A DNA stretch of 64,000 nucleotides, taken from Gracilinanus agilis (lineage: Eukaryota). Under the pieces are notes generated by a model that worked only from the letters and a program-made list of their open reading frames with translations, made no database searches and was not told the origin of the DNA. The position numbers were made by a program, and so were the translations under genes. Positions 21,945-31,259 of this stretch are shown here, piece after piece (within the stretch, counting starts at the first letter, position 1; every line of letters starts with the position of its first letter). The stretch lies in assembly GCF_016433145.1 (NCBI RefSeq), contig NC_058130.1:143768034-143832033 (forward strand). The letters are read 5' to 3'.

Positions 21945-23395
21945 ATGGCTCTTGGACCGCTAGCGGTACTACTGGCGCTGACATTGCCGAGATTGACTTG
22001 GGGGGAGCCGGCCTCAGGTAATGGGGTTGGCAGACCAGGGGACACTGACTCCTGGCCGGAAAGTGTCCAGGGGTGGAGGAAGGTACTACGGACAGTTCTC
22101 TGTGGGTGAAGCGGGTCAGGGCGGGAGAGGATGGCTTTGGGGCACGCCTCCCCCGGTCCACTTCCGAAGCTGGGGTGCTGGAGGCGAAAGGAGGTCCCCC
22201 CCAATCTCTGCCCTACTTGGGTGAGGGTGGGGTGGAGGGGGGCACTCCACTTAATACACGTGGGCTTCTCAGACTCGGGACCGGTGAACACCCCGCCTCA
22301 TAATGACTTCACGCCCCAGTAATGTGAGGAGGAGGGGAAAAGGGGGGGGGTGTCGGCCCAGCTCCCGGGAATGAGTCACACAGGCTACGAGGTTGAAGGG
22401 GGGGGGGGCAAGAGTTGGACGTCTCCTTTAACGCCCCCCCATCTCCTTCTGTCCTGTGGTCTCCACCTCTCCCCCTACTACGGTGTCTCCGATGAAATTG
22501 TTCCACCGAACTTTAGGAACCAGGCATCCTGCCTTCTCAGCCCTTCCAAATCTAGCCCTTTCAGAACCCGAGTCCTGCCCCCTAGCCCTGCGGTCACCTG
22601 TCTGGAATGTCGGGAGGGGGGGCTCTGATGTCTGGCTTTTCTGACTCACCAGAAACTAGAGCTCCAGCCCTGACCTCAACCCCCGGAATAGCCCTGACCT
22701 CTCTCTCCTTACCTCCTCCCCCCCCAACCCATCCTGGGGAAGATAGTGTGGGAGGCTCCTTCCCTCAACTTTCTCCCCTTTTCTTCCCAGCACCCTCTCC
22801 GTGTCCCCAGGGCAGTTCTTGGAGCCCAGACCTGGACAAGTGCATGGATTGTTCCTCATGTCCAGCACGACCATACAGTGACTTCTGTCTTGGCTGTGAG
22901 TGGAAAGGGGGCCTGGAGGGAAATCAGGGATTTTTTTGGAAGGAGAGATGAAGATTGGCATTTAGAGAAGTGGACCAGGACAAGGTCTGAGAGGACACTA
23001 TTGTTTATGGTTTGTAAATCAGACTTTTGGAGAAAGTAGGCTAGGAACAGGTGGAAATTTGGGAAGCTAGTAGCAGTTGTAGGTTTGGGACCTTCATTGA
23101 CTTTCTTCTCCCTCTCCCCCAGGCACCACAGCACCTCCACCGGCTTTTCCTCTGCTGTGGCCAGTCTTGGGGGGTACACTAGGTCTGATGCTCATTATAG
23201 GGCTCCTTTCTGGCCTTCTCGTCTGGAGACAGTGCCGAAGGAAAGAGAAGTTCACCAGTAAGTATTCAACCTTCCTTGGCTCCTTTAGCTTTAACATTAC
23301 ATTTGAGGGCATTAATGATCTTATCTCCCTGACTTTTAGCCCCCATTGAAGAGACAGGTGGTGAAGGATGTCCAGGCACAGCTTTGATCCAGTAA
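21945..23395 (+). CDS. TNFRSF12A: TNF receptor superfamily member 12A (Fn14/TWEAKR), 4 coding exons, 122 aa
   Basis: Exons 21945-22017, 22791-22895, 23123-23257, 23340-23395; all GT-AG and in frame (369 nt). Signal peptide, single CRD CPQGSSWSPDLDKCMDCSSCPARPYSDFCLGC, TM segment, TRAF-binding PIEET tail ending ALIQ*. Confidence 0.97.
22368..22378 (+). promoter_or_regulatory. Overlapping TEAD (GGAATG) and AP-1 (TGAGTCA) motif in TNFRSF12A intron 1
   Basis: GGAATGAGTCA at 22368-22378, plus a second GGAATG near 22605. Function inferred. Confidence 0.5.
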
Positions 23396-24601: not shown

Positions 24602-24907
24602 TTGATTTCACAAAGACCCCATCCCCAAAGATGTTCCTTATCCTCCAGAACAATCTATGGTTCTATTTCCTTGACCATCTCTTGAATTTGTATGTAGGTA
24701 AAAGACCTATCTCAAACTAGAGATTACAATTATCTATTTCTGTGTGCAATATGTGGGTGTCTAGACCCTCTTCCACGTCTTTGGTCTTTTGTGTCTGTGG
24801 CTTCCAGAGACAGCCAGATTCTGTCCATCTCCAACTCACGGAGTTGGGGTTAGGGTCACTGAGAGGCCAGAGTTCCTGAGGGACAGGGGCAGTTAGTTGC
24901 TTGAGGC

Positions 24908-27326
24908 TTAGAGTTCCATTGCCTCCCCACTATGGGGGTTGTGATTCTGGTATACCTGGGAGCCCCCCAGTCTCAGCAGACGAAGGGTTTCTGGGATTTG
25001 ATTTCCTGGATATTGCCAAAGCAGAAGCTCTGAGTGGGGATTCCTAGAAGCAAAAACTGAAGTCAGGGGAACTTGGTCCTATTATAAGTCTTACGTCTTT
25101 TCCCTCTTCCCATTTTCCAACACTTACAGGGCCAGCAGGAGGCTGGGGCAGAGGACCCCAAGATCCCCAGTTGAGTAAAGAGAGTCTTCCAAAGGCCTGT
25201 AGAGGAGGGGAAAAATTCAAAGTCAGCTAAATATGACAAGTGACATAAAAGTGATATAATTGGTCCTGAGGGGGTAGGATGGGCTAGAGCTAAGGCAGCT
25301 CTTGATTTGGGGCATAATCCCAAAATCTTATGAGTTGCACATAGAACCCAAACCCAAATGAATAGGCCTAATCATGTGAACACTGAGCATTTAGTGTGTC
25401 CATGGTCTTATACTAGAAATTGAAGATATAAAAATGAATGTCTTCATTCTAGTATGGGAGATAAGACAGAGACGCAACTAATTAAGGGAGAATTTGATAA
25501 GTGTATGAGCTGGAAGATGGCAGGAGATCCCAGTGAATGTTTTAAGCTGTCCAGTGTTATTACCTGATCACAGGTGGGGCTGGAGTGCCCATGGAGAAAG
25601 CTACTGATGGGCCACAGCAGGGGTGATCATTGTCCAGGCTGAGGTGGGAAAAATGGGAGATCATGTTGTCCTCAGACAGAAAATGCTTCTGAAGAGAGTC
25701 CCTGGAAAAAAAAAAGATCAGGAAATTGCCTGGGACAGAATACTTTTGGGAAAAAGATCACAAATTTAGAGCTAGAAGACACTGCAGATGTCATCTAGTA
25801 AATTTTGTAGAGGAGGAAACTTGGGATCCAGAGGTTAAATGTCAAGGTCAAATCTAGCACCTTTCACTGTACAATGCTATGTTTTTCTTAGGCCTGGGGA
25901 ATAGGGGAATACTAAGAGATAGGGCCCAAGGAGAAGAACCCAGGGGCCCAGGAGAAGAGAGGGAATTGGTTCCTGAGGATGAGAATTTTGGTAAATGGTA
26001 GGATAGGGAGAGGAGGGGAAGAGGGAACCACTTCCCCTTCCCTTAAACTCACTGATCCTCCTCCAGCAATTGACTGGTGCTCTGGGGCTGAATTCCTTGG
26101 GGAAGGGAGCTGTGGAAGAGATAAGAGTTAAAGCCTAAGTTCTTTTTTCTCAAGAACCAATATATTAGGGTTCTTGGGCTCTAAGACTTTTGCCCTATAA
26201 AAGACATCCAGACTTCAGGTCTGTAATCTTTAATCTAGGCCACATCCCCTCCTTCTCTTCCTTTCACTAGCTCTGCACCACATAATCCAGGGATTCATGT
26301 ATTCCTCTTTAGATTTGTACCACATATTCCAGGTACCCTGGCCCTAGCCTTCCATTCTTATTCCCTATAACCCAGGCATCCTAGTCATACATGTACATCC
26401 TCAGCTCTGTACCATCTAACCTGGGGAGTTAAGCCCCTTCAAACTCTACTCTGGATCATATATAGATGTGCTCATGTGTGTATAAAATCTAGGCATCCTA
26501 CTCTCTATTCTCAGGTATAACCCAGACAAAAGGCCTTCATTCCCAAATTTTATCAAATAACCAGAGGGCTCTGGTTCTTAAGTTGTCTAATATAGAAGTC
26601 TCAAACCTGAATGCAGCCTAATCCAGATCAAAATGTAATTGGGAAATATTTAATATAAAAATGCAATGAAATTAGATAATGTATTTTAAAACTAAGAATA
26701 GAAAAGGGACCCCCTTTCTATTTTGAATTTGACACTCCTATTCTAACATAAGACCCAGACATCCAAGGCCCTGGTTCTCAGCTTTGTGGATTATATAATA
26801 TACAGGAATCCAGATGCTCAGCCTTTACTTCTGGTGCTCGGTAATACAACTAGGGGCCCTTATAACTCATGCCAGAATTACATTAACTCCTGTATACTGG
26901 CCTTCAGTTCTATGTCCTGAAACCCGTGTATCCTGGCCCCTGATTCTTCACCTCTATTGTTTATAATTCTGGCATCTTGACTCCTGGTCATCATCAGCTC
27001 TGTAGCCAGGAAGCAAGGCGTTCCTGACCACTCCAGTACCCGTATCCAATCTACAATCCTGCTGAGTTGTGCGTACTGCAAGCAGCCCCGGTCCTGATTT
27101 ACAGCTCTGGGTGTCCTATAACCCTGGTTTCTAAGCCCCCAGTTCCCAACTCTGTACCCCATAACCCAGGCATCCGGGATATTCAGGATATCCCGGGGTC
27201 CCGCCTGTCCACTGCCCTCTGGGCCACACACCAGGCATCCAGAGTCCTGTCTGGCCCTTGTGCTTCCCTGGGGTCTTTCTGGGCCCCGGCCGGGCGGCCC
27301 AGATCCATGGGCGGCTGAAGGATCAT
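24908..27326 (-). CDS. HCFC1R1: Host cell factor C1 regulator 1 (HPIP), 4 coding exons, 141 aa
   Basis: Exons (minus) 27326-27232, 26109-26053, 25701-25564, 25043-24908; in frame (426 nt). MILQPP... / ...QKHFLSEDNMISHFSHLSLDNDHPC... / ...SELLLWQYPGNQIPETLRLLRLG...AMEL*. Syntenic position fits. Confidence 0.93.
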
Positions 27327-27960
27327 GGAGTTCCGAGGACCTGCTGGCAAGAAAGACTCGGAGCCCGCTGCCCCGGAGGCGAGGGACCGGGAGTCTCCTG
27401 ACTCCCGCGGCACCGCCACCAGCAGGCGTGTCTCCACTTCGGTGGGGAGGGGCCACTGAGCGGAAGAGGGCGGGCCTCACTGGAGACCGGTGGTTAAGCG
27501 GTCGCTACTACGCAAGCGCATAGTGCCGTCCGGCCGAGGCGCGCTCGCTGAGCGGGGACTTCGCGCAGGCGCGGGGAGCGGCGCGCGGCGGGACGGTGGG
27601 TCCGAGCCCGGCGGGCGAGAGGGGCCAGTCGTGCACGCGCAGGGAGAGGAGTTGGGGTTGGGACGTTGCGAAGCTTGCTGCGAGCCTTGGTAGCATTCAG
27701 TTCAGCAGGCTGAGTGCTCGTGGGGTCTTACAGAAGCCGGGGATCCATTCACGCCCATCGTAGGGGGCGGGGGCAGATGTGAAGGCGGAGTGTGCCGCGC
27801 GCCTTTGGATCGCGTCACTCGTCGGCGTCAAAGGCCCTTCTGGGAGCTGTAGTCTCATACCGAGGGGTGGGGCGCCATTCTCTCCACACGTCATCCTGTG
27901 GGAGGGGGTCTAGCCGGCATGGTGGGGTGCGGGCCGGCATCAAGGCCGAGGAAACAGGCT
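27180..27960. promoter_or_regulatory. CpG-island bidirectional promoter of HCFC1R1 and THOC6
   Basis: CpG-dense. TGGGAGCTGTAGT (27841-27853; ACTACAGCTCCCA on minus, ZNF143/THAP11-type), NRF1-like GCGCAGGCGC (27563-27572), ETS-like CGGAAG and GC boxes. Confidence 0.8.
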
Positions 27961-28287
27961 AAACAAAAATGGCAGCCAGAGGGAAGGAGATTAGAAGTCA
28001 GGAAAAACTTCCTGATTCGGAGGGATATGAGTTGTAGTGTAAATCAAAAATCTGCCTCCCCCAGAACGCTGCTTCCTGCGTCCCACTTTGCTCTCTCGGG
28101 GGGGCTGGGAGGAAGGGCCCTGATGGCCCTGTGGAGACTCAGGGCAGGAGTGCACTTGGTGGAGGGGGGGTTGGCGCAAGAGTTGGCCTGGTTCCAGGCA
28201 TAGGACTAGGAAGGGACCCAGCCCTCCGAGTGACCATTCTAGTTTGACAGGGGACTGTATATGACACCAGTGTCTGCTCCTCCCCAG

Positions 28288-31259
<2,972 letters not shown>

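Follow-up and report, generated by a model that had tools for sequence, protein, structure and literature searches.

An opossum HCFC1R1 (HPIP) orthologue with cysteine at the tyrosine anchor of its HCF-1-binding motif, and anchor changes in other marsupials

The 64,000-nucleotide stretch of opossum genomic DNA analysed here (the window) contains, on its minus strand, an orthologue of HCFC1R1, the gene for HPIP (HCF-1 beta-propeller-interacting protein), a small protein that has been defined, named and annotated entirely through its binding to HCF-1. In the opossum gene, the position of the Tyr anchor of the HCF-1-binding motif is occupied by Cys, and the motif thus reads DHPC for DHPY. Sequence comparison together with published peptide data makes it probable (roughly 0.7) that the opossum protein is an intact, selected HPIP that lacks canonical docking to HCF-1 and is retained for a docking-independent function.

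The motif lies in exon 3 (25564..25701, minus strand), where the six codons given by the original prediction, AAT GAT CAC CCC TGC TGT (NDHPCC), were found again on re-reading at 25631-25614. The remnant of the HCF-1-binding motif itself, GAT CAC CCC TGC (D-H-P-C), occupies 25617..25628 on the minus strand, and a contig from run X1 and the RefSeq protein XP_007499196.1 (P0021) agree with it. Its last codon, TGC at 25619-25617 (GCA on the plus strand), stands at the position of the ancestral Tyr anchor and is, as predicted, a single base away from TAC; Tyr would need a C>T change on the plus strand at 25618. The Asp, the His, the Leu four residues before the His (H-4) and the Cys directly after the anchor (Y+1) are all retained. 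With the sequence DHPCCGPS, the opossum protein matches neither (D/E)HxY nor [DENQ]HxY nor the shifted DHxxY register with its Tyr anchor, and no other [DENQ]HxY or DHxxY was found in the five opossum exon translations. The reading frame is continuous and the splice sites are canonical, in agreement with the predicted intact open reading frame (ORF).

The TGC codon is almost certainly real and derived, and not a slip of the assembly. Run X1 accounts for 97% of the sampled words, and one of its contigs spans 24850-26650 at word depth 27. This contig carries TGC, shows no difference at the motif and departs from the window only at 26276; because of this one departure, it is more than a verbatim copy of the assembly. 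The RefSeq Monodelphis protein XP_007499196.1 reads DHPCC, yet it has His where the window has Tyr at codon 25177-25175 and therefore represents another haplotype or assembly than the window. Run X5, which is approximately 5–6% divergent from the window, provides a gap-free contig over 25530-25662. All six C>T changes tallied for X5 fall elsewhere than 25618, so that X5 has no Tyr codon at the motif, a state deduced from a tally of change types in a low-depth contig with 36 rows unprinted. TGC might in principle stem from an error in sequencing or assembly, or from a rare allele that the animal chosen for sequencing happened to carry, in that only one base separates it from TAC and X1 may share its animal or strain of origin with the assembly. 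However, the agreement at TGC of a contig that differs at 26276, the Cys in a protein that differs at another codon and the lack of C>T at 25618 in the divergent run make such an error or allele very improbable. Over 24850-27400, runs X5 and X17 share differences and small indels at approximately 5–6% from the window, and their version appears to be that of a close relative or a deeply divergent population. When the 34-residue exon-3 ORF was looked up in public assemblies, no exact match was obtained.

Comparison with other therians indicates that the Tyr was lost. Exon 3 was used in an exhaustive HMMER search of representative proteins, and word and profile searches from the returned identifiers were used to collect species. 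The HMMER search returned therian HPIP proteins only. No monotreme, sauropsid or fish homologue was present among the 14 representative hits or the best 120 of 189 profile hits, and the protein database searched held no second didelphid HCFC1R1 protein, for example from Gracilinanus. D-H-(P/S/L)-Y occurs in 109 of the 110 usable eutherian sequences (~80 named species), the sole exception being the African elephant with HHPY. DHxY is kept in six of the ten marsupial species, as DHPY in Sminthopsis, Trichosurus, Petaurus and Vombatus and as DHSY in Antechinus and Sarcophilus. The motif reads HHPY in Macrotis (bilby, XP_074053025.1), DYPY in Notamacropus eugenii (tammar wallaby, XP_072459143.1), NHPY in two annotation versions of Phascolarctos (koala, XP_020851144) and DHPC in Monodelphis (XP_007499196.1). 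The alignment of the ten marsupials has Tyr at the anchor in all but Monodelphis, including all nine non-didelphid species, and the column is Tyr in every other therian compared. Because eutherians and the other marsupials carry Tyr, this residue is ancestral for therians, and Cys is a derived loss on the didelphid branch. The original prediction had stated that the motif was lost or never present; the loss stands, while the never-present part does not, given DHxY in eutherians and in six of ten marsupials. The related proposal that HPIP acquired HCF-1 binding only in eutherians would be compatible with the opossum sequence taken by itself, but DH[PS]Y in Sminthopsis, Antechinus, Sarcophilus, Trichosurus, Petaurus and Vombatus speaks against it and reduces its probability to practically nothing. 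The idea that the motif was never there was rejected on this marsupial alignment.

Human HPIP reportedly binds HCF-1 via DHPY and carries a CRM1-dependent leucine-rich export signal, and over-expressed HPIP is said to shift HCF-1 to the cytoplasm. Deep mutational scans are available for peptides of KANSL3, DIDO1, SETD1A, UL48 and IRF1 (preprint 10.64898/2026.03.19.712392). In these five peptides, no replacement was tolerated at the acidic, His or Tyr anchor, the shifted DHxxY register still required Tyr, Pro at Y+2 was strongly disfavoured, and flanking positions added to the affinity (10.64898/2026.03.19.712392). In addition, the pull-down of HCF-1 was abolished by a Tyr-to-Ala substitution (preprint 10.64898/2026.03.13.711608). 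Because only Tyr is tolerated at the anchor and the opossum protein has no second motif, we infer from these peptide data that canonical HCF-1 binding through the Kelch domain has most likely been lost in opossum HPIP.

The distribution of anchor residues suggests a marsupial-wide relaxation of the motif, of which the opossum would be one case. In four of the ten marsupials, one of the three anchors has been altered by a single substitution, each time a different one: Tyr to Cys in the opossum, His to Tyr in the wallaby, Asp to His in the bilby and Asp to Asn in the koala. Since a different anchor is affected or a different replacement is found in each lineage, the alignment indicates four independent events. 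All three anchors are kept in the dasyurids, the wombat, the brushtail possum and the sugar glider. The dasyurids (Sminthopsis, P0138; Antechinus, P0137; Sarcophilus, P0136) have a one-residue deletion after the motif (DH[PS]YC-PSA), with Pro at Y+2.

Over the 69 columns of a conserved core that marsupials and eutherians have in common, the minimum number of state changes in marsupials is 25, of which 4 fall on the three anchor columns (the brushtail-possum retrocopies described below were left out of this count). The same columns show at least 105 state changes in eutherians, with 1 on the anchors, and the comparison of anchor changes by columns gave a Fisher one-sided p of 0.005. Within marsupials, the binomial probability that 3 of the 69 columns receive 4 of the 25 changes is P = 0.022, and P = 0.043 when Petaurus and the cassette exon are added (95 columns, 42 changes). 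Counted by species or sequences, 4 of 10 marsupials versus 1 of 110 eutherians have an altered anchor (p = 1.2e-4). These modest but consistent statistics indicate that marsupial anchors change at the rate of an average site or faster, and that eutherian anchors are among the most constrained positions. Across marsupials, KHFLSEENMVSHFSHLSL and SELLLWQYPGNQIPETLRLLRLG are near-invariant; in terms of blocks, this near-invariance concerns the one that precedes the motif and LLLWQYPGNQIPETLRLLRLG. As a separate observation, elephant HCFC1R1 (Loxodonta africana; P0130, P0139 and P0140) also departs from the other orthologues at residues that do not vary elsewhere, with LRL for LSL and LHLWCYSG for LLLWRYPG, and the NCBI model of this gene differs at the C-terminus. 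Relaxation or decay may be under way in this species.

The NES-like (nuclear export signal) sequence IPETLRLLRL was predicted to be kept, and it is present in exon 4 at 24997-24968. IPETLRLLRLG differs by one residue from the eutherian IPEALRLLRLG and is invariant across marsupials except for the dasyurids (Thr to Ile). Over the 26 residues of the NES block in exon 4, most Australian marsupials show no difference from the opossum. In our own reading, the upstream block MVSHFSHLSL would also fit the classical hydrophobic spacing of export signals. The reading STSQLL at the place of the basic patch STKRRL was correctly noticed, at 26081-26064 in exon 2, but it is common to marsupials and not specific to the opossum. 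All marsupials compared have STSQLL, STNQLL or STSKLL versus STKRRL in eutherians, which makes it a difference between clades.

In the explanation that we propose, a single A-to-G transition on the coding strand would have changed TAC to TGC, and DHPY to DHPC, on the didelphid lineage, and the Tyr-to-Cys change is apparently fixed. Opossum HPIP would then be without canonical docking to the Kelch pocket and would no longer serve as a CRM1-dependent export adaptor for HCF-1. Selection would hold the protein for a role other than Kelch-pocket docking. Because the motif erodes across marsupials while the rest of the protein is held, the maintained function is probably docking-independent; the role that we consider most plausible is that of a small shuttling or adaptor protein linked to CRM1 and acting via the two conserved blocks.

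Several points weigh against this explanation. The peptides scanned do not include HPIP, and Cys may be tolerated in its specific context. A consensus of [DENQ]HxY has been given (10.64898/2026.03.13.711608), and hence the koala NHPY may still bind. The event counts are small, with one reference assembly per species except for Monodelphis and the koala. The sampled runs are Logan contigs with introns, none recorded as RNA, and no splice joints were seen in them. It is also conceivable that the substitution is mild and that opossum HPIP still binds and regulates HCF-1 through its flanks, a second contact or a bridging partner. The contribution of flanking positions to affinity in the mutational scans, the retained Asp, His, H-4 Leu and Y+1 Cys, and the conservation of the motif surroundings among marsupials are all in line with residual binding. 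Such binding is nevertheless unlikely, as Tyr was the only residue tolerated in five of five peptide backgrounds and Tyr-to-Ala abolishes the pull-down, and the independent anchor changes in the wallaby, bilby and koala argue against constraint on the marsupial motif.

Decay of HCFC1R1 in the opossum, with Tyr to Cys as an early step of pseudogenisation, would be in keeping with the loss of the defining motif and with the cassette codon at which the window has a derived Tyr and the other marsupials all have His. This alternative is quite improbable in view of the intact ORF and the eight canonical splice dinucleotides. Moreover, exon 3 differs from that of the brushtail possum at only 5 of 45 residues, mostly conservatively besides Tyr to Cys, and the NES block has stayed the same as in most Australian marsupials despite the deep split between didelphids and australidelphians. 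A further alternative, which we regard as doubtful, is that marsupial HCFC1R1 works without HCF-1 altogether, its motif eroding repeatedly and its invariant blocks serving an ancestral HCF-1-independent function. The four anchor changes, the dasyurid deletion with Pro at Y+2 and the marsupial-only cassette exon beside the motif would then all be signs of this erosion. Were this the case, eutherians too may rely mainly on the ancestral function, and the erosion of the motif may be adaptive under alphaherpesvirus pressure. A preprint describes HCFC1R1 as a host factor required in the VP16/HCF-1 axis of herpes simplex virus 1, and because of this requirement uncoupling from HCF-1 could be favoured.

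The minus-strand gene is an intact, syntenic opossum orthologue of HCFC1R1/HPIP, as indicated by its Pfam HPIP matches, canonical splice sites and THOC6 and TNFRSF12A flanks, and it consists of four constitutive coding exons and one marsupial cassette exon. The exons were compared singly against RefSeq and homologues. Exon 3 matches Pfam PF15226 (HPIP) with 49.5 bits (E = 7.8e-13) and exon 4 with 41.4 bits, each far above the gathering cut-off of 22.1 bits. All exons are on the minus strand. The coding part of exon 1 (27232..27326; MILQPPMDLGRPAGAQKDPREAQGPDRTLDA plus 2 bases) begins with the start ATG at 27326-27324, is followed by the donor GT at 27231-27230 and is found exactly in RefSeq P0021. 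Exon 2 (26053..26109; SLPQGIQPQSTSQLLEEDQ) has canonical AG/GT splice sites. Exon 3 (25701-25564) translates to (R)DSLQKHFLSEDNMISHFSHLSLDNDHPCCGPSVAFSMGTPAPPVIR, also given as DSLQKHFLSEDNMISHFSHLSLDNDHPCCGPSVAFSMGTPAPPVI, and contains the conserved KHFLSE(D/E)NM.SHFSHLSL block together with the degenerate HCF-1-binding motif. The cassette exon (25128..25196; 69 nucleotides, in-frame, PLEDSLYSTGDLGVLCPSLLLA-L) lies between the motif and the NES. The coding part of exon 4 (24908..25043; NPHSELLLWQYPGNQIPETLRLLRLGGSQVYQNHNPHSGEAMEL) is exact in the RefSeq protein and ends with the stop TAA at 24910-24908. All donors are GT and all acceptors are AG at the eight splice dinucleotides checked, including those of the cassette, and, one cassette codon aside, XP_007499196.1 contains the exon translations without any change.

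Exon 3 also has an internal alternative acceptor (25638..25640, minus strand), with AG at 25640-25639 and the exon restarting at 25638, which corresponds to RefSeq isoform X2. This isoform is present in the opossum and the koala, and it loses the KHFLSEENM..HFSHLS block while retaining the motif. On the plus strand, the first coding stretch of THOC6 is at 28261..28401 (PDB 7apk_F, THO complex subunit 6, E = 2.6e-18), and an exon for the cysteine-rich domain of TNFRSF12A is at 22787..22900 (Pfam PF12191, 61.7 bits). HCFC1R1 is oriented head-to-head with THOC6 and convergently with TNFRSF12A, and the order THOC6-HCFC1R1-TNFRSF12A is also found in the bilby and the brushtail possum. Within intron 1, summed word depths climb to 2,000-50,000 at positions 26606-26660 of the window in each of the four runs, and loose ends are numerous there; the segment is a piece of an interspersed repeat, with an A-rich tail behind it.

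The cassette exon adds a 23-residue insert (PLEDSLHSTEDLGVLCPSLLLAL) after the motif and ahead of the export signal. Each of the ten marsupial species has this insert in all its NCBI models, in the wallaby with 18 residues. No insert was found at this position in any of ~110 eutherian sequences. At codon 25177-25175 of the cassette, the window and run X1 both have TAC (Tyr), whereas XP_007499196.1 and every other marsupial have His; Tyr appears to be a derived allele that is segregating or differs between assemblies. In Trichosurus vulpecula, two intronless HCFC1R1 retrocopies (P0017 and P0019) with open frames of 202 and 210 residues are located on other chromosomes. The two genes span 609 and 633 bp, the same as their coding lengths, and neither has THOC6 or TNFRSF12A as a neighbour. 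One of them reads VHPY and adjoins an olfactory-type seven-transmembrane receptor gene. Both retrocopies include the cassette exon, which means that a spliced germ-line mRNA containing it existed.

The repeated and apparently independent anchor changes across marsupials and the marsupial-only cassette exon are, from the sequences compared, what is new here; a full-text literature search gave no paper connecting HCFC1R1 with marsupials. Orthologues that are under purifying selection and have repeatedly lost the docking motif would imply that HPIP has another selected function. The opossum Tyr-to-Cys, wallaby His-to-Tyr and bilby Asp-to-His proteins could serve as natural separation-of-function alleles, with the wombat and possum proteins as wild-type-like counterparts. 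For the annotation of marsupial genomes, the finding speaks against carrying over the label "HCF-1 regulator". It offers HCF-1 researchers a simple comparative way of asking what the conserved flanking blocks do. HPIP is small and little studied, and the reach is therefore moderate.

Compared with human and other eutherian HCFC1R1 (HPIP), the opossum gene shares the PF15226 match, the exon structure and the position between THOC6 and TNFRSF12A. At the motif, the proteins agree in Asp, in His and in the Cys that comes next; outside it they share FLSEENM..HFS.LSL, the export-signal block LLLW.YPG..IPE.LRLLRLG and, at the C-terminus, G-E/D-x-M-E-L. The opossum differs from eutherians in having DHPC for DHPY, STSQLL for STKRRL and the extra 23-residue cassette exon. 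With canonical (D/E)HxY ligands of the HCF-1 Kelch domain, such as VP16, THAP11, E2F1/4, KANSL3 and DIDO1, the opossum protein shares the acidic and His anchors and a hydrophobic residue at H-4, and its ancestor had a typical motif of this kind. It lacks both their Tyr anchor and the DHxxY register. The closest parallels are in the wallaby, bilby and koala, whose HCFC1R1 has the same cassette exon and conserved flanks, with one anchor replaced in each.

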